Virus record (IMG/VR): IMGVR_UViG_3300046507_000667
Location: 1 to 64,000 of that record
Strand: one strand, 5' to 3'
DNA length: 64,000 bases
Shown one piece after another: positions 12,474 to 44,475 of the stretch; the first letter of the stretch is position 1, and every line of letters begins with the position of its first letter. A program made the translations under genes and the position numbers. The notes under the pieces were generated by a model. The model made no database searches. It had not been told where the DNA came from and worked only from the letters and a program-made list of their open reading frames with translations.

Positions 12474-12695
12474 CTGGTGTAGTTTGTATGAATAGTTAAT
12501 TCATAATACTTATATTTTCATATAAGATCAGACTATATCTTTACCCTATAAATAGAGTATTTTCTGTTTCCATTTCACTTGAAATGTACATTATAGTCGT
12601 TGAACGTTCCTCTTAAGAGGCTTCGCTGCTGATCACCTTCATCATTACATGTTAAGGACTTCCAGCAATTAAGAAAATTTAACCACGACAGATGG

Positions 12696-13448
12696 TTATT
12701 TACCAAAAATTTCACTTAAACGTTCTTCAATATTTTCAGTATAGATGATACGATGTAAAGTAATTCCATTATCTTTACAAAAATTGTCTTTTACTGAATT
12801 ACGTTTAATACTTTCACTAAGATTATGGCCTGTAAATGCCTTAGATGTTTGAAAGTGCTGTTTACCATCGAATTCAATTAAGAAATATTCTGTATCCGAT
12901 ACATGTATTGCAAAATCAAAATAGAGTTTCCTATTTTTATCTGATTTACAATTATCAAAATAAACTTCAGTATCAAAAGAAATTCCATTATTTCTTAAAA
13001 ATTCTTCAATAGTTTTAACTCCTTTAGATACTTTAGGCAATTTACCCATATTACACTGTGGGCAACGCCTATTATCTAAAAATTTTATTGGAGCTACACT
13101 ATATTCATGGCCACATACATCGTGCCTAATTTTAATCTTAGTATCATTATTATAGTACTTCTCTAAAAAAGTATATTCAGAAGCATTTGGAAGCAATTTT
13201 ACTTGTTCTTCAAATTGCTCAGGTGTTTTTGCTCTGAGCTTATGAAGTTTCTTATACTTACAAGTAAAGCATCCACCTTTATTCTGAAGAAGGTCATTTG
13301 GACGAGACTCAAATTCATTACCACAAATAGTATGTCTAAATAAAATCTTGACATTATTTTTGATATATGTACCTAAAGCTTCGTACTCTGTACCCCACTT
13401 TTCTTTTAAAGTGTTGCAAAAATCTTCATGTGAAATTTTCTTTGGTAT
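12696..13448 (-). CDS. intron-encoded homing endonuclease (zinc-ribbon repeats + Vsr/DUF559-like PD-(D/E)XK domain); no in-frame ATG
   Basis: frame open from ATA 13448 (IPKKISHEDF): H..CG..F and CxxC repeats, C-terminal IEFDGKQHF; the 166-aa track ORF lacks the first repeat. Confidence 0.8.
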   Translation of the reverse strand: MPKKISHEDFCNTLKEKWGTEYEALGTYIKNNVKILFRHTICGNEFESRPNDLLQNKGGCFTCKYKKLHKLRAKTPEQFEEQVKLLPNASEYTFLEKYYNNDTKIKIRHDVCGHEYSVAPIKFLDNRRCPQCNMGKLPKVSKGVKTIEEFLRNNGISFDTEVYFDNCKSDKNRKLYFDFAIHVSDTEYFLIEFDGKQHFQTSKAFTGHNLSESIKRNSVKDNFCKDNGITLHRIIYTENIEERLSEIFGK

Positions 13449-13472
13449 AGCATGTAAAATAGTAATTAAACT

Positions 13473-13484
13473 TATTTACATGTT
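13473..13484 (-). promoter_or_regulatory. intron-internal late-type promoter for the endonuclease
   Basis: AACA TGTAAA TA, 24 nt upstream of ATA 13448. Confidence 0.6.
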
Positions 13485-13489
13485 ATTTT

Positions 13490-15387
13490 ATCGTGGGAAT
13501 GTAATAGTCGTTAAATTCACCTACCACATTCAAGATAGTCTGCATATCTAGATTATGTACACCGGTAATTTCCTTAGACTTTAAGTCACGGACAACCTGT
13601 TGTACAGATGCTGATGCATCATTATTTAATCCGATATCTACATATACTGCACGCTTATCTGCACCACGTAGTACATTCTGCATTAGAATAGTAACTAGTG
13701 TAGCAATATAAAGCTTTGCAAAGAATAGAATATTGTCAAAAATTGATTGACCACGATTGATATGAATAACTTCTTCAGGTTTTAAATAGACAATACGAAT
13801 CTTTTCATTACCTGTAAGCTTCTTAATAGCTAGACCTGAATAGATTGCATACTTCAATGTCTCATTCTTACGAAGAAGCTTAATATTTGAGTCTCTGCTC
13901 ATCTTATTTGCAAAGACATTAGCAATGAACATTAGACGTGCATCATCTACAGCATCAAGCTGTGGTGAACCATTTGGATTTTCAGCCTTAGCTTGATTAC
14001 CCATACGGTTATTACCATCCATACTGATATCATTACGAGCCATTACCATATTTTGAAGAATGGAACCATTGCCGCCTGATTGTGTAGCTGCTGGCATAAA
14101 GGTTACATTGTCTTCTGAGTCTTGACTCTTATCTGAAGGAAGTACTGTACCATCTGGATCAATTTCAACGATATCAAGATGGATATAACCTAGTACATTA
14201 CCATCAAATTCTAATGGTACAATATTAGCTGGATTGACACGCTTAAAGATAGGACGTTCACGACCACCTACAGGAACATCTTCAGGAGTTACCTTTCCAT
14301 CTTGCGGAGCACCCTTATTCTGTTGAGCAACGTTATTTTGCATAACAGAAGTAGGATCAACTCCAAAGAAGTTCATATTTACATCTTCAGATAAAGATGA
14401 AATTTGACTATGTTCCGCAGCAAGATGGCTAGAATTACCAATAATAAAGTGCTCTTGTAGAAATGTATCTACGTTTTTAAGTGCATCTGGAACTTTACTA
14501 CGATCAATACCAAATGCTTCTTGAACACCTTCAGATAACCACTTAGAATAATCTGATTCAGTACGCTGTGATGCTTCTGTAGACCATTCACTACCTTCCA
14601 TAAGACGTTTATCTTTGTCTGAAAGAATAGTAGTTAGTTTTTGATAAGTTCTTAATGGTTGCTCTCCAGCATGCTCAGAAAGCATCTTCTTGATCTGATC
14701 ATTCATTGATAGAGCTAAGAAGAATAACTTACCATTCTTAAGAAATGCTGTTACATCTTCTTTTAGCTTTTTATTGATATTATGATCAACAAGAAGTTTC
14801 TCAATACGTTCACGAATTACTTTTTGATCTTCTTCAGCTACACCTTCAGCATTAATATGGATCGATAAAGAATCTTTCGTAAAATCATCTGGAGAAATGA
14901 TTGTATTGGCAATTGTAGTAAGAGCTAAACGCATTTTAGGAATGATCTTAATGATCATATTGTAGGTAGCAATTGCATCACCTACTTTACGACGATTAAG
15001 GTCAATCATACTAGAAAGCTGTTGTTTATTGCTTGTTAGTACTTCATTTTTAATAGCATCTAGTTCTTTCTTAAATTTCTTACCATTCATACGACGCTGT
15101 GCAGCACCACTCTTTTGAGCTAGAGTGATCATTGTATCAGTAACTTCAACGTTATTTGTTGGATTACCTGCACTAGCGAATTGACCTAAAATCTTTGTGA
15201 TATTTAGGTCAATTTTTTGAGTAAGCTTCTTAGTTTTATCAGCTAGATCTAGATCATCATTATCCATCTCTAGCTGTTTTCTTTGAATCTTTTTTGTAGA
15301 ATTGTCAAATCTATCTTGCAGCTTTCTACGTGCTGAAGGAGAAATTGGACTAGTAAAGATACTATTGTCCTGATCCTTATCTGCCAT
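13490..15387 (-). CDS. portal protein (T4 gp20 / phiKZ gp129-like), exon 1
   Basis: RGADKRAVYVDIG resembles gp20 RAPERRVFYIDVG; spliced size close to jumbo-phage portals. Confidence 0.8.
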
Positions 15388-15399
15388 ATCGATTCCTTT

Positions 15400-16455
15400 T
15401 TAGACTTTTACTTGAAGCGTATTTGTAACTAGTGCCAGTACTTCGTTAAATAAACTTGTAAGCTGTGCAATAACACCCTGAAAAGTTACTAGAGTGTCTC
15501 CATAAGGACTAGTTAGAGCTAAACCATTGTTAGCTTTATACGTCAATGCTACTTTATTCTCAAAGAATAAGTATGTAAAGAGGTCAGTCAAATTGTATTT
15601 ACTGATATTATCGGAATTGGTAGTAGTCACTACGTCATCAGCATATACCGCTAGTTCAGTATTATTGTAACCACGACCTTTGATATTTAATTCAAAAATC
15701 CTTGAAGTTAAATAGTCATCCAATAGCTTTGAATAAGGTTGATAGTTAATAAGACTATGAAAAAATACTAGATTATCTGAAAATGTAGATGAATTACCTG
15801 AATAATCTACAATGAATGAAGCTAATTGATCATTATTGAATGTAGCAAATGGTTCCATTAAATAGGCCCACACTGCTTTCAATACTGTAGCACTTCTTCC
15901 AGTAATACTAGGATCAATAGTCCAGCTAGGTAATAATGCTGATACATCTGTGACATTATGAGTAGCTAATAAAGAAGAAGTTACCTTTTGATAGAATTCT
16001 TCCTTAAATGATGTCTCATTATCATAAATACTACCATTGGCTAGACCATATTCAACATATGGCGCTGATACTGTCTTAAGAGGTACCAACTCATCATACA
16101 TTGTAGTATTTAGCCAATCACTATAACCTGAGTAAAAACTCATTAATGGGGTTGGCTGACTATCTGTTCCAAGTAACCATTGTCTTGCATTGAAAGTCGT
16201 TGGTGTACCTGATGTGTCAGTAGAAGTATTGATCCTGTCATATAGATCAAAAAAATCCTGAATCGCTTGGTCATCTAAAATACTCATATTAGCTAGTTGA
16301 CTCAAATTAATTTGTCTAAGATAAAGCATAGACATAATTCGTTTGAAATTATCAACGTTGGTTAATGAATATAACTTAGAAAACACTAGGAAGGTCTTTG
16401 GAGTTACAAACCGATCTAGATAACTTTGTAAGTCACTATTGGAAATGGTTGTCAT
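15400..16455 (-). CDS. hypothetical protein, probably virion structural
   Basis: 351 aa, in late operon upstream of portal. Confidence 0.75.
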   Translation of the reverse strand: MTTISNSDLQSYLDRFVTPKTFLVFSKLYSLTNVDNFKRIMSMLYLRQINLSQLANMSILDDQAIQDFFDLYDRINTSTDTSGTPTTFNARQWLLGTDSQPTPLMSFYSGYSDWLNTTMYDELVPLKTVSAPYVEYGLANGSIYDNETSFKEEFYQKVTSSLLATHNVTDVSALLPSWTIDPSITGRSATVLKAVWAYLMEPFATFNNDQLASFIVDYSGNSSTFSDNLVFFHSLINYQPYSKLLDDYLTSRIFELNIKGRGYNNTELAVYADDVVTTTNSDNISKYNLTDLFTYLFFENKVALTYKANNGLALTSPYGDTLVTFQGVIAQLTSLFNEVLALVTNTLQVKV

Positions 16456-17498
16456 GATGTGGTCGCAAATTGAGTTGCAGTCTGAGATTGGACGTTAGCT
16501 TGGAATAGCTGATAATTAGTAAAGAAGTTAATAAGTGCATTATATGTACTTACTTCAGTAGCAATTAGTTTCGAATCAAAGAATGCAGAACCATAAATCT
16601 TTGTAAATAATACATAGCGTAGAAATACTACCTTACGGAATGCATTGATAAAATCAGCTTCATTAGCAATTAAAGCCTGATTAAAAATAGACTGCCAAGA
16701 ATAGTTTGGATCAGCCATCAACCTATTGATGGTAAAAGTACCATCTTTTGTTGTATCATTTGCATAATCCGTAGCCATTTCCTTAGTGAATGATGTTATA
16801 TTATCAACATAATTCTCATAGATGACATCTAGAAAGGATTTACGGTAAATATAGCCATTAATAGTATCAAAGCCACCCTTGATAGGAATAGTACCTTCAT
16901 TTGAATAGACAAAATAGCTATTATTAGTAGCTGTTGTCAATGCATTCATTAAAGGACTAATATCAAGATTGAAAGATGCCTTAATCTCAGAAATATTATT
17001 TTTGGCAGCAGCTAATAGTGTTTGAGCTACACTACCATTTACTAAAGCCATATAATTAGTACGTACAATATTGACATCATAGTACGAACCTGGAATGATA
17101 TTCAATGTGTCAAAAATAATCTGTGTACAAAACCGAATTGCTGATACACTTCGACGAGTAATACGTAGTCCAGCATTAGCCATCTGATCTTTTTCAAATT
17201 GGATCCAAGTTGGAAATGCTTTAATCTTATTTCGGTAGTAAGTATATTTACTAACTAGAGTATTTTGTCCATTTTCTACAGAGGTAATGAGTAACTTCAT
17301 TGACTCATTACTAATAGGCATTGTATATAGACTATTAATCTCTAATTGACCATATACTAGATAGTACATGATAGTATTGAGAATACTAGTATCTATAGTA
17401 TTAAGTGCTGCAATTACTCGTTTGATATCAGGATTTGTCATATCTAAAGTAGATAGATACGCATCTAAATCCGTTTTATTTACTAGAACTTGTGACAT
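16452..17498 (-). CDS. hypothetical protein, probably virion structural
   Basis: 348 aa, ATGA coupling; N-terminus resembles 15400 (s.sDL.aYL). Confidence 0.75.
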   Translation of the reverse strand: MSQVLVNKTDLDAYLSTLDMTNPDIKRVIAALNTIDTSILNTIMYYLVYGQLEINSLYTMPISNESMKLLITSVENGQNTLVSKYTYYRNKIKAFPTWIQFEKDQMANAGLRITRRSVSAIRFCTQIIFDTLNIIPGSYYDVNIVRTNYMALVNGSVAQTLLAAAKNNISEIKASFNLDISPLMNALTTATNNSYFVYSNEGTIPIKGGFDTINGYIYRKSFLDVIYENYVDNITSFTKEMATDYANDTTKDGTFTINRLMADPNYSWQSIFNQALIANEADFINAFRKVVFLRYVLFTKIYGSAFFDSKLIATEVSTYNALINFFTNYQLFQANVQSQTATQFATTS

Positions 17499-17507
17499 AT
17501 AAATCCT

Positions 17508-18041
17508 TTAATATGACGAAATCGGCTTAGTCGATAGTAAATCAGAAAACACTAACTGGACTTGCTTTACATCATCCATAGACAGATTTGCTACATTCAA
17601 CTCTTGAATGACTTCTTCATTCATGATTGGTAGAATTGAATTAATCTGATCTTGGGTAAGAGTCTGTCCAGTAAGCTTTGTAAAGTTCTCAGCAATGAGA
17701 GTTTGCATCGAAGAAATATCAGGCCTAAACATGACATTTTCTTTAATAACTTCTCCACCAAATAATCTAGCTGATAGATTATCTTTCATATTCTGAGCTA
17801 ACTGTTCATCAGTAAGACCAATTCGTGCATCAGTATTCTTATCGCCAAATCGATTATACTGTGCATCATTAGGTAGTAGCTTTCTGGTATCTTCAATATC
17901 TAGAGTACCAGCTAGAATTTGTTGCATAAGCGGTTTATAGTCAGAAATATCTGACCTAAGTAACGCTGCATAGAGATCAATATTAGTCGAATCAATAGGC
18001 AAAGCGTCAAATTGTTCTTTAAGTAAACTGATACTAGGCAT
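17508..18041 (-). CDS. hypothetical protein
   Basis: 177 aa, AGGA SD, first gene of portal operon. Confidence 0.75.
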   Translation of the reverse strand: MPSISLLKEQFDALPIDSTNIDLYAALLRSDISDYKPLMQQILAGTLDIEDTRKLLPNDAQYNRFGDKNTDARIGLTDEQLAQNMKDNLSARLFGGEVIKENVMFRPDISSMQTLIAENFTKLTGQTLTQDQINSILPIMNEEVIQELNVANLSMDDVKQVQLVFSDLLSTKPISSY

Positions 18042-18062
18042 GTTTTATCCTAATGCTTTAAT

Positions 18063-18074
18063 TAATTTCTTGTT
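18063..18074 (-). promoter_or_regulatory. late-type promoter AACA-N6-TA
   Basis: AACA AGAAAT TA upstream of portal operon. Confidence 0.7.
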
Positions 18075-18126
18075 ATAGCCTTATTTCTTTTGAAAAATAT
18101 ACAAAAAAGAAAACGAAGTAGAATAG

Positions 18127-18159
18127 AACCCTATACCTTCACTTGGAAGGTATAGGGTT
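18127..18159 (-). terminator. terminator, CCCTATACC family
   Basis: AACCCTATACCTTC-ACTTG-GAAGGTATAGGGTT. Confidence 0.85.
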
Positions 18160-18170
18160 ATCTAACTTAC

Positions 18171-18335
18171 TTATTTATCAGAAGATAATTTCTGCCATGA
18201 TGGTGAACCATAATAATGAATGGTAAAATCATCAGACATATGATTCATGAAATGATGTTCTTCTCTGGTACATGTAGTACCATCGGCCCATTCAAAAATA
18301 TCTTCAAGATCTGGTGTTGGTATTGAATTATCCAT
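18171..18335 (-). CDS. small hypothetical protein (54 aa, MDNSIPTPDLEDIFEWADG...)
   Basis: TAATG coupling to upstream gene; ends before terminator; below ORF-track cutoff. Confidence 0.65.
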   Translation of the reverse strand: MDNSIPTPDLEDIFEWADGTTCTREEHHFMNHMSDDFTIHYYGSPSWQKLSSDK

Positions 18336-18685
18336 TACTGGTTGGTCACATAAAAATCAAATTCTTCCTGTCGAATGACATTGATTTGTGTTACAAATGG
18401 ACCAGCGCCTTCATAAGCATCATTAATACTAGATGCACGAGGCAGATCAATATCAAGCCTTCCTCGGAATGGTTTGATAATCTGAATTGATGCAAGGTTA
18501 TGATACAGATTACGTGGGAAAGCTGTCTTCCAAGCATCAGCAATTTGGAAACGAACTGCGGAACCAGTATGAGCTTGAAGCATTAGCTCAATATTGTATC
18601 GTTGTTCCATAATTAATTCCTGGAATTTACGATAGCCTTCTTCATCAAAAGCTTCTAGCGCCACTTCTTGAACAACGTTTTCCAT
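18335..18685 (-). CDS. hypothetical protein
   Basis: 116 aa, coupled. Confidence 0.75.
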   Translation of the reverse strand: MENVVQEVALEAFDEEGYRKFQELIMEQRYNIELMLQAHTGSAVRFQIADAWKTAFPRNLYHNLASIQIIKPFRGRLDIDLPRASSINDAYEGAGPFVTQINVIRQEEFDFYVTNQ

Positions 18686-18900
18686 TAGTCTTCTACCTTT
18701 ACAAGATTGATTGCTGGAGGCATTTCGATTACTTTCTGCTCACTAAATACTTGATCCATCTTGTTGTGCCAATCCATAGTATCAAATGGATGTACTACAA
18801 CTTCGGAATAATCATTGATATCTTTATTTCCACGGAAATAAAGCTTTCCACAAGGAAATTCAAGAATATCTTTTGGATCTACAGGTCTTACTATGTCCAT
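18685..18900 (-). CDS. hypothetical protein
   Basis: 71 aa, coupled. Confidence 0.7.
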   Translation of the reverse strand: MDIVRPVDPKDILEFPCGKLYFRGNKDINDYSEVVVHPFDTMDWHNKMDQVFSEQKVIEMPPAINLVKVED

Positions 18901-18902
18901 TT

Positions 18903-19517
18903 TTAAGCTTCCAATTTAACTCGTTTGTGTCGACCAATACGATCGTATTGAAGCATATAAGGTACCCCGTTCCTATCAAGCTTATACTCTCGATCGGTTT
19001 CTACTCGAATATCATGAAGTGAAAAGCCTTCTATGATATAAGGACGGTTACTTTCTTTTCTTTGATTATCATTTGTAAGCATGAAAAAGGGCAAAACCGC
19101 CTTCTCTTTTTCACGTTGGTTCTCAAAGGAATGTTGAATATGGTCGTCGAAAAGAACTGTATCGAAGCGAGCAATATTATGGTGCATGTATGCACCATCA
19201 TAAATAAACTCACCTTCCGCATTATTCATAAAGAAAGTAAGACCTGTTGTATTAGAAAATTTATCTGTATGAGATCTTACACCATTAGGATGACAGATCA
19301 TAAGATTAAAGAATCCATCTGTCAAACCAAGTCTATCTGGAATCAAAGTTACATCACTTTCAGCAATTTCTTGATTAAGTTGGATGCTGTAATGATGCTT
19401 AATATCCTTATCATCATCCTGATACCACATATTCTGAAATAATGCACCGATATAATTACGGATTTGCATCATTGAAAATACACGGATTTCTGATTTACGG
19501 AAAATAGGATAAGACAT
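18903..19517 (-). CDS. 2OG-Fe(II) dioxygenase-like protein
   Basis: SHTD (HxD), GEFIY, VLFDDHIQHS distal His; double-stranded beta-helix pattern. Confidence 0.6.
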   Translation of the reverse strand: MSYPIFRKSEIRVFSMMQIRNYIGALFQNMWYQDDDKDIKHHYSIQLNQEIAESDVTLIPDRLGLTDGFFNLMICHPNGVRSHTDKFSNTTGLTFFMNNAEGEFIYDGAYMHHNIARFDTVLFDDHIQHSFENQREKEKAVLPFFMLTNDNQRKESNRPYIIEGFSLHDIRVETDREYKLDRNGVPYMLQYDRIGRHKRVKLEA

Positions 19518-19550
19518 AGTATAAGATTTATGTAAGTTAGAATAAACTAC

Positions 19551-19748
19551 TTAGTATTGTAGTTCTACATCATCCTCATCTTCCTGAATACGACGGAAGT
19601 CATTAGGAGTAAGATTACGAACGTTACGATTAAAATCTGATTTAGTTTTAGCTTTCGCACCACGGTTCTGTTCTTTTTTAAAGCCCTTCGACAGACGAGC
19701 ATCTTGATCTTGAACGTTCTTATTTGGTGCAATGATTTCTTTAGCCAT
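19551..19748 (-). CDS. small charged hypothetical protein
   Basis: 65 aa, basic N-terminus, acidic C-terminus. Confidence 0.7.
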   Translation of the reverse strand: MAKEIIAPNKNVQDQDARLSKGFKKEQNRGAKAKTKSDFNRNVRNLTPNDFRRIQEDEDDVELQY

Positions 19749-19811
19749 TTCAGTATTACAGTAAATTTTTTATGAAGTTTTATGGAAAAATGTTTACTAC
19801 TAAATCAGTTG

Positions 19812-20042
19812 TTATTCTGGATCTACTACAGAGAATTCAATTTCATCATGCTTAATCAGAATCTGATTAGCAGGGAAAAGCTGTTGAAGAGTACTATACA
19901 AATGCGTAAAAGCAAGACTATCTTTATTAGTAGCCATCTTAGTATACTGTTCTTTTGGAACAGATACTACAAGAACTTGACCCGGTTCAAGTTTAATCTT
20001 TGAAACTTCTACTTCAATCACTTTAAGCTGTGCTTCAGTCAT
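19812..20042 (-). CDS. hypothetical protein
   Basis: 76 aa, AGGA SD. Confidence 0.7.
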   Translation of the reverse strand: MTEAQLKVIEVEVSKIKLEPGQVLVVSVPKEQYTKMATNKDSLAFTHLYSTLQQLFPANQILIKHDEIEFSVVDPE

Positions 20043-20409
20043 TTGATGATCCTTTACCTAAACCTAAACCAATACGATCAAATCTTTCTTGCAAACGTTC
20101 ATCACGTTCTTTCTTTGTAGCACGCCAGTATTCATGATTAAATAGTGCGGTAGCTGTTTGGCTTACTTCACTTTGGCTAACTGAAGTCTTATTCACTGCA
20201 TCAAGTGCAACAATAGCATCATCTGGATCATTAAATTCAATAACTTCAGTAGTCAGTGCTACTGCTGGATGATTTACTGTTTTTTCATTACCACTCCAAT
20301 AAGATTGAGTAAATCCTCTTATTGATGTAGTGACAAGAATTCTAAAACGATTCCCATTAATATGGGTAGTTTTATTAGTCGCAGTTATTTGCTGATATTC
20401 CATAATCAA
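20035..20409 (-). CDS. hypothetical protein
   Basis: 124 aa, coupled. Confidence 0.7.
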   Translation of the reverse strand: MIMEYQQITATNKTTHINGNRFRILVTTSIRGFTQSYWSGNEKTVNHPAVALTTEVIEFNDPDDAIVALDAVNKTSVSQSEVSQTATALFNHEYWRATKKERDERLQERFDRIGLGLGKGSSND

Positions 20410-20618
20410 CCTTCTATATGAATATGATTGTGTGACTCATTGAAATTAGCTTGCAAAATATTGAAAAGATCAATTAATCCTTTATTTTGCTTATAAAATT
20501 CAGATTCATGAAGCTTCATTGAACCACCAGCTAAACGAAGAATACCATTAGTAATCTCCATTGCTGCTTTTCGATCAATATCAAGCTTAATCTTTTCAGT
20601 TGTGCTTTTGATGGCCAT
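20406..20618 (-). CDS. hypothetical protein
   Basis: 70 aa, coupled. Confidence 0.65.
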   Translation of the reverse strand: MAIKSTTEKIKLDIDRKAAMEITNGILRLAGGSMKLHESEFYKQNKGLIDLFNILQANFNESHNHIHIEG

Positions 20619-21712: not shown

Positions 21713-21746
21713 GGTAGGTCTTAGTAGAGTTATTAATTAAGGGATA

Positions 21747-22004
21747 TTACAAAATATTCAATGGAAAATACTTACGTTCATTTTCCTTTTGGCGTGCTGC
21801 TTTAACACGAGCTACTGCTTCTTCTGCATCATCCTTATGGATATCCCATACCAAAGGATCTGGATGAAGACGATTGAATCGAATTCCATCTCCACAGAAC
21901 TTATAATCACCGTCAAACTGTTTGTCAAAATACTTATAACCAACAGAGTGAGTTAAACCTGCCGAACGAGCTAAAAGATTAGCTAGGTTGATATAGTCTG
22001 ACAT
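21747..22004 (-). CDS. hypothetical protein, first gene after early promoter
   Basis: 85 aa. Confidence 0.7.
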   Translation of the reverse strand: MSDYINLANLLARSAGLTHSVGYKYFDKQFDGDYKFCGDGIRFNRLHPDPLVWDIHKDDAEEAVARVKAARQKENERKYFPLNIL

Positions 22005-22223: not shown

Positions 22224-22248
22224 ATAAAAAGACAATTGATTTTAGATA

Positions 22249-34830: not shown

Positions 34831-34857
34831 TTTTATGTACCTGCAAAATTCTTGAAC

Positions 34858-34900: not shown

Positions 34901-34955
34901 TATATTGCCATAGAAATATGGTGCTTTTATTCTTATCATTCAAATAAGAGAAATC

Positions 34956-35468: not shown

Positions 35469-35480
35469 GGAAAGGATCGA

Positions 35481-36894
35481 ATGTCAGAAACAGTAAAACA
35501 ACTCCTTTTTGCACAAGCAGTAACTAATCACTTCAATGGTAAGACTAAATCTTTCATTGTAGAAAAAGTTAAAAATAAGACTACAGGTAAAGTTAAGAAA
35601 CGTGTAATCTTTGATGAAAATCCAGACTTTCACTTTTATAAGACTAAGAAAGGTCATGAACTGGATTATGCTGCAAAATGTATTCCAGTCGAGAAAGTTG
35701 AACGTATTGACTGTAAGTATAATCAGTTATTTGAACTAATTGCTAAGATTACTCATAAAGAAGAAGAATATGAGCAAATCATTAGTGAGAATAAGCGTTA
35801 TAAGCTAGCAGGTCTTCATAATGATTATAATATCCATCAGTCAGATGTAGTCTTAGATGACTATCTCATGATGAAATGGGCAAGAGAAAATAAAGATGTA
35901 ACTGAACCAATTGCACTTCATAAGGCATATTTCGATATTGAGGTGGATATCATCAATTATGATGGTTTTCCACAACCAGAAGAAGCGCCTTGTGAAGTTA
36001 ACTTTATTTCATATCTAAGTGATAAGAATCTTATTCTAAATTCATATATTCTCTATAATCGTGAGAATACTAGTATGCGTGAATTCCTACGCAAAGCTAA
36101 AATGGATAAAGAAACTAATTCACTAGATACTGCTTTAGGTAATGAATGGGCATTAAAGGTACTGGAAGAGCATTTCACAGAACCAAATCCTAAGTCAAAA
36201 TCATCAAAGCCACTAAAGGGTCTATGTGTACGAGTCTTTACAAGTGAGCAGGAATTAATCAAAGCTTTCTTTGATGATGTTCATGAAGACAAACCTGATT
36301 TCTTAGGCGGATGGAATAGTCACTTCGATATTCAGACTATTAAATCTAGGCTTGAAAATCATTTAGATGAAAAAGCAGTCAATTTCTTTTGCCCTTCAGA
36401 CTTTCCATTTAAGAAAGTGGATATTCGAAAAGATGAGCATGCTATTGACGTGTCAGATAGAGCGCATGAATTCTCTATCTCAGGCTACACTATCTTCTGT
36501 GACTTATTGTATTACTATGCTTCAATTCGAAAGACTAGTAAGGGTAAGAAAGAATCATGGAAGTTAGGTGATATTCTTCTTGAAGAACTAGGTGAATCTA
36601 AGTTCGAATATGAAGGTTCGATTAAAGATGCAGCATACATGAATTATGAGGCATTCTTAATCTACTCACAGATTGACTCATATCGTCTATATCAGCTTGA
36701 AGAAAAGAATGGCGACGTTGACCTTCTATATGGTATGTCATTGCTTACACATACCCGAATTGAAAAGGTTATGCGTAAGACGATTTCACTGAAGAACCTA
36801 GCAACAACAATGCTATTTGATAATGGTTATGCACTATGTAATAACCATAATAAGTTTATCAAGACCGGAGAGAAGAAGAAATTCCGGGGAGCAT
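35481..36894 (+). CDS. family B DNA polymerase, 3'-5' exonuclease/motif-A subunit, exon 1
   Basis: YFDIEV (ExoI), GWNSHFDI (ExoII), YSQIDS (ExoIII); joins exon 2 as FRGAFVANP; 574 aa spliced. Confidence 0.9.
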
Positions 36895-37678
36895 TAACCA
36901 TAAGTGCTCTTTAAATATACTTAATTGCTGGAAAACCCTCTGCTAAAGGGCAACTAGCAGCTATTTGATCTGCCAAGGTCACACAGAAAAGGTACTACAT
37001 GAAAGAGATCATTTTTAATGATTGGTTGAAATCATTTCTTGATTATGAAATTGATTTCAATGCAGTTAAACCAACACTCATCCGTTTATATGAGGGTGAT
37101 AAATCCTTTGAAGATTTTACAATCTCATATAGTATGAAAAAGGGAGTAATTCCTAATTTCACTATTCGAGAGGATGAATTAAATGGTGTAAAGGGTATTG
37201 TTTTACAAAAAGCAAATCGCCGATCTACTCGACATGTATTTTTACAAGATTTACCGTATAAAGTACGTGCTGTGGAATATAATAAGAAAAGTATGCTATG
37301 GCGTCTTGATCTTTATTATAAAAAAGAATTGTATTACTATCCTAGTGGTGAACGTCGTTATGATCATCGACTTCATTTAGATGGTATCAATGATAATGAT
37401 GAATATTGCTTTTCATATATTCCAAAGCAGTATGAAGCATTTAGTATTATGAAAGGATTTATCGATCCATTGATTATTGATAAACCTAGAGAGAAAGGTC
37501 CAGCTCAAATCAAAAAGAAAGCAGATCAAAAATTCACGAAACGACCCTTGGCGATTAAGTAGTTCAACGACTATTATGTACATCTCAAGTGAGATGGAAA
37601 CAGTATACTCTGATGATATAGTCTGATCTTATGTGAAAGCATAAGTAGGTAGATTAACGACCTACCGACAACACGATG
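36895..37678 (+). mobile_element. group I self-splicing intron (784 nt) in DNA polymerase subunit gene
   Basis: AATTGCTGGAAA, CTAGCAG, GTTCAACGACTA, GATATAGTCT; IGS GTGCTCT pairs exon GGAGCAT; P10 CCATAA pairs TTGTGG; terminal G at 37678. Confidence 0.93.
36999..37562 (+). CDS. intron-encoded protein of unknown function (no clear homing-endonuclease motif)
   Basis: intact 187-aa ORF with AAAGG SD located between intron Q and R elements. Confidence 0.75.
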   Translation: MKEIIFNDWLKSFLDYEIDFNAVKPTLIRLYEGDKSFEDFTISYSMKKGVIPNFTIREDELNGVKGIVLQKANRRSTRHVFLQDLPYKVRAVEYNKKSMLWRLDLYYKKELYYYPSGERRYDHRLHLDGINDNDEYCFSYIPKQYEAFSIMKGFIDPLIIDKPREKGPAQIKKKADQKFTKRPLAIK

Positions 37679-37989
37679 TTGTGGCAAACCCTAACCTGAT
37701 TGCAAAGGTTGGAATTGAGGTTAATGGTTCTAAAACTCATAATATTTTTGAAAATGTAATTGACGAAGACTTGGCTTCACTATATCCGTCTATTATTCTT
37801 TCATCTAATATTGACTCTGAAACTATGATCGGCAAGATCTTAGCTGAAGATGATGATGAGTATTTAGGGCTCTTCGGTGAAATGATTGCTGAAGCTGATT
37901 TAGTATCTATTGGTAATCATTTTCTAAATCTACCATCTTTTGAAGATGTTGTAGAAAATATTGGCGATTTCCTTCTGGAAGAAGCATAA
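37679..37989 (+). CDS. DNA polymerase exonuclease/motif-A subunit, exon 2
   Basis: DEDLASLYPSIILSSNI = PolB motif A. Confidence 0.9.
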
Positions 37990-38321
37990 TGTATAATAGT
38001 AAAGGTAAAGTAGAGATTTCTCAGAATAATAGAGTTATTGTAGAATCTGATGGTAAGACAGTAACTGTAGTAGAACCATTTAAATTCCCTGATCTCTCAA
38101 AACCTCTCGAAAAACCAAGAGATAGAAAAAGCAATTATACTAATCGTGTAGTAACTATGCGACCAGTAACTCCAGTAGATGCTAGACATGGCACTGATGC
38201 AGAAATCCAGATTGGTACTCTTCGAGTAGGTCTGTCTGGAAAGGAGTTTATGGACGTATTAACTACTATGCAGAGACATCTTGCAGATAATCCAGAATTA
38301 CTAATTCTAGCAAAGAAATAA
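37989..38321 (+). CDS. hypothetical protein
   Basis: 110 aa, TAATG coupling. Confidence 0.75.
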   Translation: MYNSKGKVEISQNNRVIVESDGKTVTVVEPFKFPDLSKPLEKPRDRKSNYTNRVVTMRPVTPVDARHGTDAEIQIGTLRVGLSGKEFMDVLTTMQRHLADNPELLILAKK

Positions 38322-38386
38322 CGATTAAATAGGTGATACAAGAATAAATCTTGTATCACCTTCTATTTTTCTTATCGAGTGAAAAA

Positions 38387-38737
38387 ATGGATCTGATTAA
38401 ACGGAATTTTATTGATCTGCCGCCTTGCAAGAATACAATGGTTGAATTACCAGATAATCATCCACTTCGTCTAGCTGTAAAGAAGCTTGCTCTTAATGGT
38501 AAGACGATGACCTTTTATCCTGAACTACCAGAAGTTGAGAAAATTGTATTTGCTATCTTTTGGGATGGCTCTTGTGGTATTGTAAAGTATACAGGTGCTT
38601 GGACATATAAATTAGTATCTGGTGGCTATATCAATAAAATGCCTATTGCTTGGTGCAAAGCCACAGAGACCAGTAAGTTCACCGAGAAGCAGCTTGAGTT
38701 CGTTTATCAATTGAAGAACTTATATCAAGACAGATAG
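38387..38737 (+). CDS. hypothetical protein
   Basis: ATG 38387. Confidence 0.7.
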   Translation: MDLIKRNFIDLPPCKNTMVELPDNHPLRLAVKKLALNGKTMTFYPELPEVEKIVFAIFWDGSCGIVKYTGAWTYKLVSGGYINKMPIAWCKATETSKFTEKQLEFVYQLKNLYQDR

Positions 38738-38763
38738 GCTTAATTTTAAATGGAATTTGAAAC

Positions 38764-38910
38764 ATGTCAACACAAGTTAATGCTGAAGAAAACGGTCTAA
38801 ACGAAACTGAATTAGACGCACTCTTTGATCAATTTTGGGCTGTAGAAGGTCCAAAGGTATCAGATGCTTTAGATAAGTTCTTTGCAGAAACTCGTAAAGA
38901 GGTTCAATAA
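38764..38910 (+). CDS. small acidic protein (48 aa, MSTQVNAEENGLNETELDALFDQFW...)
   Basis: TAATG coupling to next gene; not in ORF track. Confidence 0.65.
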   Translation: MSTQVNAEENGLNETELDALFDQFWAVEGPKVSDALDKFFAETRKEVQ

Positions 38911-39128
38911 TGGCTTGTGGACTTTGTGGTTGTGAAGGCATTCATGCTTGTATCGGTCATAAACCTGCTCCAATGACAGAAGAACAAAAAACTGCTTTAG
39001 ATAGATTATTTAGAAATTTTGATCAAGATCAGCAGATGATTGAAGAATTAACTGTTGAACAACTTACAGCTATTAAAAAGGCATCGGGCATAGATCAAAG
39101 TAATGTAAATAATATTGATCCTTTTTGA
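38910..39128 (+). CDS. small protein with N-terminal Cys/His cluster
   Basis: MACGLCGCEGIHACIGH. Confidence 0.7.
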   Translation: MACGLCGCEGIHACIGHKPAPMTEEQKTALDRLFRNFDQDQQMIEELTVEQLTAIKKASGIDQSNVNNIDPF

Positions 39129-39140
39129 AATAAATATTAC

Positions 39141-39151
39141 AAATATATTAT
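39141..39151 (+). promoter_or_regulatory. early-type promoter AAATATATTAT
   Basis: exact motif upstream of 39199. Confidence 0.65.
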
Positions 39152-39198
39152 TAACTTGATACACTTGTATCTTAACTTCTAATAGATGTGGGAGCTTC

Positions 39199-39927
39199 AT
39201 GGCCACAAGAAAAGAAAAAACAGATGATGAATTGCGTCATTCACTTTTGAATGATATCAATCAGATTCTCAAAAACTATGAAGTATATTCTTATAACCTT
39301 GCTAACGATGTATTTTATGGCAAGTTTGCTGGTTTCAATTTTAAGTATCGTGACTTTGGAACTGAAGGTTTTCTCTCAAGTGTTAATTTCAGTATCACCG
39401 ATGGAAAATCACTCTTCAGTGCACTAAAGACAGTTGATAAAGTACGTATGATTCGTAATGAGAACGATAAGACTGCTGAACCGCAGAATTCCGTTCTTTC
39501 AATTATTGATGATCATTCGAATCCTATTCCGTATCGTGAATCGGATTTCAAGATTAAAGGTGCAGTAGGTTTGTCTCTTAACCTACAAGATGCAACATTA
39601 AGATATAATGATGAAGTAGTAAAAACTGGACAATTGTTTCCAGAAGATATTACTGGAGCCGTGCGAGGTTCAGATAATGATCATTCATTGATCTTTCTGA
39701 ATTTCACAACTGACTCTATCATTATTCGGTCAAGCAAGACGGATCTTGATACCAAACAACCGTTCTTGATTACCGATAAAAAGACCTTCTTGAAGATTAA
39801 GCATGGCAAGAAGGAGGATTACTATTTCGATATTAAATTCCTAGATAATTATACTAAGATTTATATCCGATATGGTACTGATGCACGTATGCTAACATTG
39901 TTTGCAAACGGAATCTTTAAGTTCTAA
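39199..39927 (+). CDS. hypothetical replication protein, possibly sliding-clamp-like
   Basis: 242 aa, weak resemblance to T4 gp45 segments; next to SSB-like gene. Confidence 0.35.
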   Translation: MATRKEKTDDELRHSLLNDINQILKNYEVYSYNLANDVFYGKFAGFNFKYRDFGTEGFLSSVNFSITDGKSLFSALKTVDKVRMIRNENDKTAEPQNSVLSIIDDHSNPIPYRESDFKIKGAVGLSLNLQDATLRYNDEVVKTGQLFPEDITGAVRGSDNDHSLIFLNFTTDSIIIRSSKTDLDTKQPFLITDKKTFLKIKHGKKEDYYFDIKFLDNYTKIYIRYGTDARMLTLFANGIFKF

Positions 39928-39985
39928 AAGAACTATCAGCCTTAAATTCACATCTCTTATCCTAACTAAATAAAGGAAGCCTATC

Positions 39986-40831
39986 ATGGCATTTACAAAA
40001 AAAGGTAGCGGCAACGCCGAAGGTCGTCAATCCCGTCCACAAGCAACATACACAAATGCAGATTTTTCATCATATGATGGTCTGTTTAGTGCATTGAGCT
40101 TTATGCTCATCAATCAAAGCACCACACTTCAACTAGCCCCTATTGATCCAGCAATGATCGGTAAGCAGCCTAAGAAGGGTGAACGTGTCTATGATTATGA
40201 CAATAAGCTTACTGTAATGCTTAATGCTCCATTTGCAATGCAATTGCAAAAGGCATTCGAGTATATTACTGATCCAGAATTGGATGCAGAAGTTACTCAA
40301 ATTACAGTTAGTACTGGCGTCGAAGGTAATTCTCGTGCTGTCACAATCTTCCGTCCGGGTGCAGTAAAGCTAAAGGTTGCTGGTAAGTCAACACAGTTTG
40401 ATGAAAACTATCTCATGAAAATTGAGATCACCAAAGATGGCGATACCACTCGTGCATATCATGTAATGCAGAATTCTGTTATTACATTCGGTATGAAGAA
40501 TGCTGAAGGCGTTAAAAGTGAAGATGAAGTAACAATCGAACACGACATCGAGATTATTAAGCAAGTATGTCAGCGTGTTATTGACACTGCTCTTGGTCTT
40601 TCACGTCATGGCGCTACTCAAGCTGTTCGTATGAATGGTGGTGGTAGCAGCCCAGCCCGTAAGAAGAATGCCTTCCAAGGCGTTGAAGAGGGCGAAGATG
40701 ATGGTGGTAGTGATGGTGGAGACAGCGAAGAAGAAGATGGTAATACTTCTAAGAATGGTAAGAAGCAAGCTGTAAAATCTACTCTTGCTGCTGAATTCGG
40801 TGAAGGTGAAGACGACGATATTCCCTATTAA
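39986..40831 (+). CDS. single-stranded DNA-binding protein-like
   Basis: beta-rich core, Gly/acidic linker, C-terminal EDDDIPY like bacterial SSB DDDIPF. Confidence 0.65.
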   Translation: MAFTKKGSGNAEGRQSRPQATYTNADFSSYDGLFSALSFMLINQSTTLQLAPIDPAMIGKQPKKGERVYDYDNKLTVMLNAPFAMQLQKAFEYITDPELDAEVTQITVSTGVEGNSRAVTIFRPGAVKLKVAGKSTQFDENYLMKIEITKDGDTTRAYHVMQNSVITFGMKNAEGVKSEDEVTIEHDIEIIKQVCQRVIDTALGLSRHGATQAVRMNGGGSSPARKKNAFQGVEEGEDDGGSDGGDSEEEDGNTSKNGKKQAVKSTLAAEFGEGEDDDIPY

Positions 40832-40861
40832 TATTAAATAAAGGGAAGTAGTAAATAACAT

Positions 40862-40892
40862 ACCCCATAAGGTCTTAATGATCTTATGGGGT
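40862..40892 (+). terminator. terminator hairpin
   Basis: ACCCCATAAGGTC...GATCTTATGGGGT followed by T-run. Confidence 0.8.
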
Positions 40893-40931
40893 TTTTGTTT
40901 TACCTTATAATTTTTAAATAAAGGATTGGTT

Positions 40932-41765
40932 GTGCTTAAGCAAACTGACGATAATACGTTTGTCATCAATAATGGTGGTTCAGTACGTAGTAACAATCTG
41001 AGTTTAGCAGGTGCATCATCTAAGAAGACTAAGTTTGTATTGGCAGTAGACTATGATGAAGTCATTGTTAATATCAATCATAAATGGATGCAGAAGCTGT
41101 TGAAAGATGAAGTGATTAGTAATTACTTCTCGCCAGAGCATCGAATTGTAGCTAATCTAGAAGCAAATCTTCGTACAGACTACGATGTATTTAACTGGCT
41201 TGGTATCAAGCATGGCGCTCCAGAATTTGAACGTGGAATGAGTTTGTATTTTAATGATCCTAAGTTCTATAGTAAGCTAAAGCCAACTAAGTACTTTGAA
41301 TCGATTTATCAAGCTCGTCACTTCTTTAGTGAAATTCATATCATTACTAAATGTGGTGAAGATCTTGATGCACCATGTAATATTGATAAGAAGCGCCAGA
41401 TGGCTTTCCTATTCCGTAATTTTGACGGAATTAAGCTAGGTTTTCACTTCATCAAGAGTTCAGAATCTAAAGCACAATATTTCAAGCAAAAAGGTATTAA
41501 GTTTGATTCCTTTGTGGATGATGCACAATCCAATATGCTTGACATGATCAATGTATTCAAAGATGAATTTAATTTTGAAGCATTGATGCCATTGTATTGC
41601 TATAACTTCCTGACTCCTCAGAAGATTGATCCTGCATGGATTCATGATGGTCGAAACCAATTCCGGTTCTTCCATAATCTTGAGAGTTTGAATACTCAGC
41701 AAATGGGTCAAATTGTTAAAGAACTAGAAGCAAAACAGGCTGAACAGATGCTTGTAGCGGCATAA
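40932..41765 (+). CDS. HAD-superfamily 5'(3')-deoxyribonucleotidase (NT5C-like)
   Basis: VLAVDYDEVI (DxD), IHIITK, FVDD motifs; GTG start after AAGGA. Confidence 0.75.
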   Translation: MLKQTDDNTFVINNGGSVRSNNLSLAGASSKKTKFVLAVDYDEVIVNINHKWMQKLLKDEVISNYFSPEHRIVANLEANLRTDYDVFNWLGIKHGAPEFERGMSLYFNDPKFYSKLKPTKYFESIYQARHFFSEIHIITKCGEDLDAPCNIDKKRQMAFLFRNFDGIKLGFHFIKSSESKAQYFKQKGIKFDSFVDDAQSNMLDMINVFKDEFNFEALMPLYCYNFLTPQKIDPAWIHDGRNQFRFFHNLESLNTQQMGQIVKELEAKQAEQMLVAA

Positions 41766-41775
41766 AAATTGTCAT

Positions 41776-41815
41776 GGGCTAATGGGAGAAATTCCATTAG
41801 CCCAACAATCTTTTA
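41776..41815 (+). promoter_or_regulatory. hairpin 41776-41803 immediately followed by late-type promoter 41804-41815
   Basis: GGGCTAATGG...CCATTAGCCC then AACA ATCTTT TA. Confidence 0.65.
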
Positions 41816-41855
41816 GACAGTCTTTTTTTTTTGCTTCGTTAAAGGAACACATGAA

Positions 41856-43244
41856 ATGAATTTAGATGTGTTAAATATTGACGACTTTATTAAGGTTAAT
41901 GGGATTAAGCAAGTATCTTCACCATTTATCTTTGCTGCAGATAAAACACCTGATCCAGAAGGTATCTTCTCATATGATATTTTTGGTCGAGTTGGTTCTG
42001 TAGCTCGTAAAGTCAATTATGGTTATGTGGATCTTAAACGAGAGTTTATTCATCCATTCGTATACAATATCTTGCAATCAGTTTATCGTAATCTTCCTCT
42101 GATTATTTCAGGTGATAAATACGTTAAACTTGGTCCAGATGGTACCATTCTCAATGCTAAGGACGATGATCCTGAAGGTCAGACAGGTATTGACTTTATT
42201 ATTGATAATTGGGAAAAGATTTCTTGGGAATCAAAATCTTCTACAGCTAGTCGTGAAAAGAAGTTAGCTATTCTTAGTGATTTTTCACGCAGTGAAATCT
42301 TCGTTACTAAGTGGCTAATTATTCCTGCAATGTATCGTGATATTAATTTACATTCACAAGATACAGGCAAGATTAGTATGGATGAAGTTAATTCATTTTA
42401 TAATAAGTTAATTAATCTTACAAATTCTGAATCAATTACTTTTGCTTCAAGTACTAATACTCAGTCTGCAGTGCAGATGAATCTAGTAGATATTCATAAC
42501 TATTTAACAAAGAAACTTTCAGGTAAGCGTGGTGTTATTCGTCAAGCTGTTATGGGTAAGACTATTGACCATGCAGCAACAAACGTTATTTCTGCACCAA
42601 GGTTCAATGATGAACACTATAAGAATCAGCTAGTACCTTATAACTATATTGGAATTCCATTGTATGTTATTTGTGCTACATTCTATCCATATTTCTTAAA
42701 ATGGATGGAAGATTATTTTTATGGTATTGAACAAAATGCTGAATTCGTATTCGGTGGTCAAGTATATGACTCCAGTATGGCCGCTAATGTAGTCAATTCA
42801 GAATCTATCCGTAAATTGATTACTGCTTACGTTAAAGATAAGACAAAACGTATTCGTACTGCACCATTTTCACTTAATAAGACAAATAGAAAGCTACAGT
42901 TCCGTGATGCTATTATTAATTTCCGTGACTATACTCTAACTGATCTTTTATTTGAAGCTGCAGAGCAAATTGTTAGTAATAAGTTAGTCCTTAGTACTCG
43001 TTATCCTGTTACTGGTTCAGAATCTATTATTATGAACAAAGTACGGATTTTAACTACAGAAGAAACTATTGATATGACACCAAGGCTTCGTACCCTTAGT
43101 GAATCAGCTAAGTTTCAATATAGTAAGTATCCAAGCTTCCCATATGATAGTACTGGCGCGGTTATTGCAGATCATGTACGTTGGATTGATTCCCTAGTAC
43201 CAAATAACTCCTTCCTAGCTGGTATGGGTGGTGACTATGACGGT
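41856..43244 (+). CDS. rpoC: phage RNA polymerase beta' subunit, N-terminal/catalytic part, exon 1
   Basis: PDPEGIFSYDIFG, GKRGVIRQAVMGK, RYP; ends GGDYDG; 515 aa spliced. Confidence 0.92.
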
Positions 43245-43290
43245 AGTTTTGCAATAAATTTATAGATTGTGCTAAAATGGGTGGTGATTA

Positions 43291-43302
43291 AACAAAATCA
43301 TA
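43291..43302 (+). promoter_or_regulatory. intron-internal late-type promoter
   Basis: AACA AAATCA TA, 16 nt before ATG 43319. Confidence 0.6.
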
Positions 43303-43318
43303 ATTTGTATATAGGATT

Positions 43319-44290
43319 ATGATTATGGCAAAAGCACTAACTCTAGCTGAATTTCAAGAAAGGATTTCAGCAAAATATGACAATGAGTATTCATTAATTT
43401 TCTTCAAAGCACTAGCAGTTAGAGCTCCTATCATTCTTAGACATAGTTGTGGACATGAATTTGAATCTACTTTTCAATCATTTGTAAATGATTCTAAAGG
43501 TAAATGCAAAGTATGCTATTTACAAACTAGTAAAGGAAGACAAAAAGCTCTTACTGAAGATGAGTTAATAAAAAGGCTTATTAATACTGAATATAACTAT
43601 ATATCAGGATTTATTAATACTAAGAAGAAAGCTTTATTTAGACATAGCTGCGGACATGAATTTGAATCTCTACCAAGAGATATTTATAGTAATAAGTCAG
43701 GCTGTCCAAAATGTGCTAATAAAAATAGAGGTAAATATCAAGTTAATAAAAATTATTTAGAATTACTACTATCTGTTGAAGATGGTAATGAATATAAATG
43801 GTTAGATAAGTTTAGGGATAATAAAACACTTACGCTTATTAAACACTTAACTTGCAATAATGAATATAAAGTTCGTCCAAATGATTTTCAACAAGGTTAT
43901 CGTTGTCCATTTTGTTCTGAAAAATTTCCTACAGAATCAAAAAGTGTTAAGCACATAATAAAACGTCTTACCGAATTAAATATTTCTTTCGCTAGAGAAT
44001 TTACTGATTCTAGATGTCGTTTTAAAAATGTGCTTAGATTTGATTTTGCTATTGATTTACCAGATAGCAGGAAACTTTTAATAGAATTTGATGGTAAATA
44101 ACATTTTCATCCCTTAATTAATGAAGATGTATTTGAACTTCAAATTGAAAGAGATTTAGTTAAGAATCAGTTTTGTAAAATATACTCTAAGGAGTATGTA
44201 TTAGAAAGAATTTCTTATAAAGAAAATGTAGAAGATAAATTAGTTGAAATATTATTAAAACACAATCTTGTAGAGTATTGCCGTCATTAA
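43319..44290 (+). pseudogene. intron homing endonuclease (3 zinc-ribbon repeats + Vsr/DUF559-like domain) with premature TAA at 44099-44101
   Basis: IEFDGK*HF versus IEFDGKQHF in the portal-intron paralog; frame continues 62 codons (RD..KNQFC...ERISY) to TAA 44290. Confidence 0.8.
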
Positions 44291-44475
44291 ACTCTCTTAA
44301 TTGCTGGAAACCCTTAAATGGCAATCAGCAGCGAATCTTTTTATGAAGAACGTTCAACGACTATTATGTACTTATCAAATGATAAGGAAACAGAGAGCAT
44401 CGAAAGATGAAGATATAGTCTGGTCTTATATGAAAATATAAGTATGATAGTGTAATAAACTATCGCAACACTAAG

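Follow-up and report, generated by a model that had tools for sequence, protein, structure and literature searches.

The first 64,000 nucleotides (nt) of the virus record IMGVR_UViG_3300046507_000667, here called the window, hold three group I introns: I1 in the portal gene (1016 nt, 12474-13489, minus strand), I2 in the gene for DNA polymerase B (781 nt, 36895-37675, plus strand), and I3 in the gene for the beta-prime subunit of an RNA polymerase (RNAP) (1231 nt, 43245-44475, plus strand). We consider it probable that these introns are mosaics, each joining a ribozyme core specific to this genome with a guide-plus-nuclease module specific to its insertion site, and that the events behind them are old. 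The cores track the genome and the guide and nuclease modules track the site, a pattern in the sequences that points to modular exchange rather than to mutation of the guide. The record is a complete virus of 249,347 bp with direct terminal repeats; several rhizosphere metagenomes hold near-identical DNA, and the nearest isolate to this soil phage is Yersinia phage phiR1-37. Eight group I introns of one family (I1 to I8) are found in the genome, three of them in the window, so that the three colonised genes of an earlier, sequence-only reading of this DNA were an undercount.

Judged by sequence, motifs, and predicted structure, I1, I2, and I3 read as genuine group I introns of phage IA type, and the codon at which each is placed is a highly conserved one in an essential gene. 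A covariance model search with Rfam model RF00028 placed two matches in the window above the gathering score of 50, at 12509-12752 on the minus strand for I1 (84.5 bits) and at 44243-44442 on the plus strand for I3 (81.1 bits), the two E-values being 5e-19 and 5e-20. I2 reached only 32 bits, in a search of the whole genome, because a 564-nt open reading frame (ORF) lies within its P6 loop; with a covariance model built from its relatives, the 3′ half alone reaches 72 bits. Changes on both sides of a pair with pairing kept were seen for 20 of 49 pairs in one alignment and 12 of 29 in another, and fall in seven helices, among them P3, P5, P6, P7.2, P9, and P9.1. All three introns contain, without a single mismatch, the two core motif strings first noticed in this DNA, and the compensatory stems noticed with them (CATTTC/GAAATG, CATCTC/GAGATG, and CTTATC/GATAAG) are versions of one hairpin, P7.2, whose pairing is kept through two-sided changes. 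The description of the cores as near-identical holds for the conserved blocks but not overall, since I1, I2, and I3 are 74 to 79% identical to one another over about 150 aligned core positions. The quoted motifs are generic and not special to this genome; the triple TAATTGCTGGAA..ATCAGCAGC..GTTCAACGACTA was found in at least 112 to 114 IMG/VR stretches, as was the P7/P9 string. A fourth exact copy of GATATAGTCTG in the window, at 21990 (+), is a chance occurrence, being the beginning of a minus-strand ORF (MSDYI) read in reverse complement, with no model match there.

In each of the three introns, the internal guide sequence is matched to its own exon, as had been claimed, with seven pairs and, at the 5′ splice site, a U.G wobble. 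The guide of I1, GTCGTGG (12683-12689), pairs with CCACGAT, where the exon ends at 13490; that of I2, GTGCTCT (36904-36910), with GGAGCAT, ending at 36894; and that of I3, GCCGTCA (44280-44286), with TGACGGT, ending at 43244. For P10, CCATCT faces AGATGG in I1 and GTATT faces GATAC in I3, while the pairing in I2 is weak. The terminal intron base is a G in all three (12474, 37675, and 44475), and the outer two of these positions, exactly the 3′ splice sites, had already been picked out as the ends of the region of interest. By the group I mechanism, the guide would pair with the last seven exon bases to form P1 with the U.G at the cut, guanosine would attack the 5′ splice site, and the terminal G together with P10 would align the 3′ exon for ligation. 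The introns lie in phase 2 (I1, AT/A, the slash marking the junction), phase 1 (I2, T/AT), and phase 0 (I3). Their removal restores the host frame at all three predicted junctions, CCCACGAT/AGATGG in the portal gene, GGAGCAT/ATGTTG in the polymerase gene, and GACGGT/GATACA in the RNAP beta-prime gene.

The cores were compared in maximum-likelihood trees of up to 179 distinct introns collected with a covariance model; the P3-to-Q and R-to-P9.1 halves were aligned separately, with guides, P6, and cargo left out, and support is given as ultrafast bootstrap (UFBoot)/SH-like approximate likelihood ratio test (SH-aLRT). No foreign intron fell inside the set of I1, I2, I3, and I6, the last in the RNAP beta gene, in any of four trees (106, 171, 179, and 80 introns). 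In the 106-row tree, all eight introns of this genome and one foreign intron formed one group (98/80); in the 171-row tree, I1, I2, I3, I5, and I6 were exclusive (59/95). The 179-row tree, which took in the intron of the RNAP site in phiR1-37 and the sole foreign introns with the P7.1-less signature described below, gave an exclusive group of the form {I2, (I1, (I3, I6))} (98/74), with I5 plus I7 next (84/87), and a tree of 80 composition-matched, AT-rich rows gave an exclusive group of I1, I2, I3, I5, I6, and I7 (83/22). The pair of I3 and I6, at 82% identity the closest of all, was strong throughout (100/92, 100/95, and 96/95), while I4, I7, and I8 shifted between trees, at times joining foreign introns. 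An approximately unbiased (AU) test of I1, I2, I3, and I6 as a group in the 171-row tree (p = 0.20) did not reject it, which is no proof of it.

A discrete character is also shared. Subgroup IA2 is marked by two additional helices, P7.1 and P7.2, that lie between P7 and the 3′ strand of P3. I1, I2, and I3 have a single hairpin, P7.2, and no P7.1, while I4, I7, and I8 have both. The string GACTAT[AT]A[TC]GTAC, which marks the deletion of the P7.1 hairpin, was found only in I1, I2, I3, I5, and I6 among 174 distinct introns; in IMG/VR the signature is present in only 7 stretches, of which 3 belong to this phage and the rest take other positions in the tree. Exact runs common to the intron copies are 12 to 43 nt long, and the 43-nt run of I3 and I6 takes in the variable P7.2 hairpin. 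The phylogeny that had been proposed as a check thus shows cores that are not each closer to foreign introns than to one another, and the central claim of one ribozyme lineage in unrelated genes is supported by the exclusive grouping of the I1, I2, I3, and I6 cores and by the loss of P7.1, which I5 shares. Staphylococcus and Bacillus phage introns are 70 to 73% identical to these over about three-quarters of the core, a few points below the within-genome values.

The RNAP site gives a different picture for the intron's 5′ portion. At the identical RNAP codon (GGDFDG/D), phiR1-37 has a 1416-nt intron with g179 in its P1 loop. In the annotation of that phage (NC_016163.1, 122027-125008, locus L250), g178 (RNAP), g179 (‘HNH endonuclease’), g180, and g181 are listed as separate genes and no intron is annotated; from the sequence, g178 and g181 are both exons of a single beta-prime gene, and the group I intron between them carries g179. 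The leader of I3 resembles that of the phiR1-37 intron (z = 4.4) and not those of I6 (0.5) or I1 (−1.2), and its nuclease is sister to g179 (97/96). The phiR1-37 guide GCCATC pairs with exon GATGGT where GCCGTCA pairs with TGACGGT in I3, so that the guide covaries with the exon. The core of I3, in contrast, is far closer to those of I6 (z = 25.5) and I1 (21.7) than to that of phiR1-37 (6.7), which is of another subtype with long P5, P6, P7.1, and P7.2 and groups with foreign introns (100/91), far from I3. An orthologous 5′ module is thus combined with a paralogous core, and the intron at this site is therefore best read as a mosaic. The sequence-only reading had the family spreading by changing its guide sequence; at the RNAP site this does not hold, in that the leader and guide-bearing nuclease of I3 are orthologous to those of the phiR1-37 same-site intron and the core is not.

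The cargo nucleases likewise follow the site. Those of I1 and I3 are homologous (PHROG 559, 40% identical) and both sit in P1 loops; the same family is found in I6 (P1), I7 (P6), and I8 (after P9), and no free-standing copy exists elsewhere in the genome. In an alignment of the I1, I3, I6, and I8 nucleases, identity is 29 to 40%. In a tree of five nucleases from this genome and 21 relatives from other viral contigs, those of this genome did not cluster; the I1 nuclease is sister (90/86) to one in contig L084 that lies inside a portal-gene intron of a distant phage. The proposal of independent cargo gain is therefore half right: the I1 and I3 cargoes are homologous, but the nucleases of this genome do not form a cluster in the tree. 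The placement of cargo was as first described, in the P1 loop of the portal and RNAP introns and in the P6 loop, between Q and R, of the polymerase intron. The PHROG 559 nucleases have treble-clef zinc-finger repeats and a C-terminal ExDGxxH domain with weak similarity to DUF2726, and the profile of this homing-endonuclease family, whose C-terminal domain is PD-(D/E)XK-like, covers most of the I1 and I3 cargoes. DUF4379 is over its cut-off in the I3 cargo only and weak in that of I1; the label ‘HNH’ given to PHROG 559 is backed by no HNH match, and a sequence search of PDB with the intact I6 nuclease returned only zinc-finger noise.

Our reading is that a single ribozyme lineage, having multiplied within this phage lineage, gave rise to the P3-P9 cores of I1, I2, and I3 and to at least one other core in the genome. 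A separate history would belong to the 5′ module, made up of leader, P1-loop nuclease, and guide, which would be tied to the insertion site and has relatives in other phages' copies of the gene concerned. Since the guide abuts the end of the nuclease in I1 and overlaps it in I3, it would travel with the module. Core and module were most likely joined by recombination across ribozyme blocks that are conserved between copies, whether it was the resident introns that took up the core of this genome or spread cores that later gained site-specific modules. Alternatively, one can envision that nuclease-free cores reached new sites first and that site-specific nucleases came later. Given that the cores are 74 to 82% and the nucleases 29 to 40% identical, the spread is not recent, contrary to what had been proposed.

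Several points weigh against this mosaic interpretation. Support for the core group beyond I3 plus I6 is moderate and varies with sampling (59/95, 98/74, and 83/22), the core alignment has only about 200 columns, and the external introns were sampled, among the matches listed, with patterns derived from these introns. I2 lacks P8, normally a universal core helix. A same-site orthologue of the portal and polymerase introns was not found, and a true new insertion in this lineage is therefore possible at those two sites; in L084, the portal intron is about 10 codons downstream from where I1 sits, and P6 holds its nuclease. The data do not place the core swap at the RNAP site in this lineage or in that of phiR1-37, and splicing of I1 to I3 is itself a prediction from sequence.

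A variant with a smaller, though real, chance of being correct is concerted evolution, in which cores are exchanged or homogenised between copies within one genome and each site keeps its own leader, nuclease, and guide. If this were true, reaching or keeping a site would need only recombination across the conserved ribozyme blocks and no change of guide.

It is unlikely, in our view, that the introns arrived independently from a very widespread family and that the grouping of their cores is only apparent, a product of common drift toward AT richness, narrow sampling, and the strong conservation of some blocks. Such an account would fit the motif sets that each occur in at least 112 to 114 IMG/VR stretches, the nearness in identity of the Staphylococcus and Bacillus phage introns, the wandering of I4, I7, and I8 among foreign introns in some trees, the grouping of nucleases by site and not by genome, and the 4 to 10 introns that other jumbo phages carry. 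It does not explain why no foreign intron falls among I1, I2, I3, and I6, even in the tree of AT-rich introns only, nor the P7.1 deletion, a discrete shared character whose sole foreign bearers fall elsewhere in the tree, nor the 43-nt identical run of I3 and I6 with its variable P7.2 hairpin.

Somewhat more doubtful still is the model of the sequence-only reading, by which one complete intron recently jumped to three genes, its guide then mutated, and cargo was gained independently. The grouping of the cores and their shared loss of P7.1 would follow from it, as would portal and polymerase sites that are empty in relatives (6 and 3, respectively), a polymerase cargo unrelated to the other cargoes and in a different loop, and a nuclease family that is found in P1, in P6, or after P9, depending on the intron. 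The divergence of cores and nucleases is too great for a recent jump, however, and an essential gene cannot wait while a guide mutates into a match. Nor was I3 newly created by a jump, since the RNAP site of phiR1-37 holds an intron whose nuclease and leader are orthologous to those of I3, and ectopic mobility of group I introns has no direct experimental evidence (PMC3984707). The notion that chance or faulty assembly produced the similarities, in genes that are simply split or broken, can be set aside: assemblies do break inside the ribozyme cores, whose copies share 31-mers, but the two Rfam E-values, covariation in seven helices, exact continuity of the exons, and the presence of the same introns in contigs of at least four independent samples leave it almost no room.

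Continuity of the host genes was followed with searches run one exon at a time. The portal exons match positions 40-586 and then 590-746 of PHROG 3004, and the polymerase exons positions 20-453 and then 473-562 of PHROG 3011, in each case consecutively; exon 1 of the RNAP beta-prime gene matches positions 8-486 of the 539 in PHROG 2986, and its exon 2 is 52 codons long. The exon halves adjoin in relatives at 6 portal loci, in 3 genomes for the polymerase, and in 2 (G002 and G004) for RNAP beta-prime.

I1, which matches RF00028 and has its 5′ splice site after T13490, separates portal exon 1 (13490-15387, minus strand; Pfam Portal_T4 at 24.2 bits against a cut-off of 22.9; PHROG 3004) from exon 2 (11771-12473, minus strand), which continues the match of exon 1 to PHROG 3004 and agrees with it in a frame check. 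Portal relatives free of I1 are only 40 to 50% identical in protein and so give no sign of a recent insertion. The core (12474-12695, minus strand) consists of the P10 sequence CCATCT (12690-12695), the guide, P3 to P9, and the P9.1 hairpin, with neither P2 nor P7.1. Its P1 loop holds a homing-endonuclease-like ORF of 250 codons (12696-13448, minus strand; PHROG 559, E = 1.5e-51), the stop of which directly abuts the P10 and guide elements. Where relatives have ATG, this ORF has ATA (13446-13448, minus strand), and the 84 codons that follow include no ATG, GTG, or TTG, so that the start has been lost or initiation is non-standard.

I3 splits the catalytic motif DYDG/D of RNAP beta-prime; it matches RF00028 and begins after TATGACGGT, which ends at 43244. 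Exon 1 of this N-terminal subunit (41856-43244, plus strand; PHROG 2986, E = 1e-91) is 51% identical to the g178 product of phiR1-37, with AR9, PBS1, and related jumbo phages matching more weakly. Exon 2 (44476-44634, plus strand), which adjoins exon 1 in G002 and G004 by tblastn, is 61% identical to the exon-2 segment annotated as g181. The core (44275-44475, plus strand) has the P10 sequence GTATT (44275-44279), the guide, P3 to P9, and P9.1. An alternative 5′ splice site after GGTGGT at 43285 was ruled out in favour of 43244, where TGACGGT, which matches the guide perfectly, comes to its end and DYDG/D is restored. An 11-nt repeat, ATGGGTGGTGA, stands at 43224-43234 in exon 1, just before the splice site, and again at 43277-43287, 33 nt into I3, and the phiR1-37 intron has ATGGGAGGT at the place matching the inner copy.

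The nuclease in the P1 loop of I3 (43319-44290, plus strand; PHROG 559, E = 5e-43; DUF4379 at 36 bits against a cut-off of 24.5) has the guide inside its last codons. It is interrupted by an in-frame TAA at 44099-44101, where three other rhizosphere samples have C at 44099 (CAA, Gln); the nuclease is broken only in the strain of the window and intact in the population. I3 was found in all four samples examined, and three strains are about 0.6% diverged from the window. The assemblies of four metagenome samples break or branch at 44297-44443, inside the I3 core, with loose ends that lead into the contexts of I6 and I2. This is because the intron copies share 31-mers, and common intron cores thus act as assembly repeats that fragment metagenome assemblies.

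I2 separates exon 1 of the polymerase gene, with the exonuclease domain (35481-36894, plus strand; Pfam DNA_pol_B_exo1, E = 5.5e-13; PHROG 3011), from exon 2 (37676-37989, plus strand; PHROG 3011), the translation of which includes DLASLYPS (motif A). The gene is continuous in relatives, two of which have it as a single open frame of 578 and 569 amino acids (aa). Together, the two exons encode about 575 aa, from the exonuclease domain to motif A, as in PHROG 3011. The coding sequence for motifs B and C must therefore lie elsewhere, which makes the polymerase a split gene in this phage group quite apart from the intron. I2 is without P2, P7.1, and P8, with just CTCTGATG between the 3′ strand of P3 and J8/7; a few foreign introns resemble this reduced core (e.g., L069:7117-7344). 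Its cargo is a 187-aa orphan ORF in the P6 loop (36999-37562, plus strand), the 3′ end of which forms the 3′ strands of P6a and P6. No relatives of the ORF were found in Pfam or PHROGs, even at E = 10, or in a protein atlas; a word search of 5.8 billion proteins found only the ORF itself, and its AlphaFold model has a predicted local distance difference test (pLDDT) score of 35. The product may help this P8-less intron to splice.

Five further introns lie outside the window (coordinates of the record). I4, at 65.4 kb, carries no cargo. I5, from 77638 to 72839, is in the terminase large-subunit gene and has 4.5 kb of cargo in P6. I6, at about 104.9-106.1 kb, interrupts RNAP beta at GPSG/LN and has an intact nuclease in P1. 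I7, from 174.4 to 173.3 kb, is in the gene for a P-loop protein with a nuclease in P6, and I8, at 186.6 kb, is in that for a Toprim protein at ELYLVEG/ with a nuclease after P9. Other jumbo phages have 0 to 10 Rfam group I matches each; among them, record G003 (the source of L069, 229,888 bp) has 8, and record G005 (the source of L067, 208,807 bp) has 10, mostly crowded into 186-192 kb. In IMG/VR, jumbo phages rich in introns seem to be frequent.

A single phage with several related group I introns is of a kind already known, and the value of the present case is the comparison of same-site introns with different cores between this phage and a cultured relative. In phage T4, the td, nrdB, and nrdD/sunY introns were reportedly recognized by Shub and colleagues in 1988 as homologous introns that occupy different genes of the same phage. 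As here, related IA-type ribozymes lie in different essential genes, have ORFs in peripheral loops, and each have their own guide. Unlike T4, this genome has eight introns, in genes for structure, replication, and transcription (portal, terminase, polymerase B, RNAP beta and beta-prime, and topoisomerase), with another nuclease family and with several cores lacking P2 and P7.1 and one lacking P8.

The Staphylococcus phage Twort is said to be a multi-intron phage, in work attributed to Landthaler and Shub in 1999. Against the covariance model built here, the best named matches are Staphylococcus phage introns, at 153 bits. In phage introns, including those of Bastillevirinae phages, nuclease type is decoupled from intron subgroup, and the IA2 subgroup is heterogeneous (PMC11878797). 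Twort and the Bastillevirinae phages share with this genome the many group I introns at conserved sites, the decoupling of nuclease and clade, and cores that may be IA2-like; what differs is that the lineage here is a phiR1-37-like one from the rhizosphere and that decoupling is resolved at a single site, where the same nuclease and leader go with a different core.

Jumbo phage PhiPA3 has an intron with a homing endonuclease in an RNA polymerase gene (PMC11620839). In PhiPA3, by its description, and in phiR1-37, as here, the multisubunit RNAP of a jumbo phage has a gene interrupted by a nuclease-bearing mobile group I intron; the I3 core differs from that of phiR1-37 in being of another subtype. 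Intron and homing endonuclease are said to have separate origins in a model ascribed to Bell-Pedersen and colleagues (Bell-Pedersen et al., in 1990) and to Bonocora and Shub (in 2009). Our observations agree with it in that nuclease and ribozyme histories differ and the nuclease lineage stays with the target gene. That model, however, has a free-standing nuclease entering an intron, whereas the RNAP site points to the exchange of a core under a retained module of leader, nuclease, and guide.

The eight related introns offer a natural test set, with at least four mutually closest cores in unrelated genes, and the exchange of ribozyme versus guide-plus-nuclease module becomes testable by comparative sequencing and phage crosses. 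For annotation, the consequence is that RNAP, terminase, portal, and polymerase genes split by introns are listed as separate small genes in phiR1-37 and similar jumbo phages.

The terminase large-subunit gene is split by the 4,800-nt group I intron I5 (G000:C1:72839-77638, minus strand). Exon 1 encodes 233 aa with the Walker A motif, and exon 2 encodes 472 aa, starting RGMSIPIYWPDEF. The P6 loop of I5 is closed by a perfect 11-bp stem and holds seven same-strand ORFs (83 to 366 aa), with no match in PHROGs; a terminator-like hairpin and T-run lie just ahead of the 3′ ribozyme half. This 4.8-kb intron may be spliced from two transcripts. Among the loci with terminase observations (L261, L255, and L256), the gene is uninterrupted in two relatives, while in phiR1-37 and G004 the terminase frame breaks at the end of exon 1 and an Rfam group I match is found next to the break, suggesting that an intron sits where I5 does. 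Back in the window, a sub-threshold Rfam match to NsiR1 at 52806-52854 (minus strand; 27 bits, E = 0.33) was rejected; with its GC-rich hairpin and T-run, the site is most likely an intrinsic terminator.

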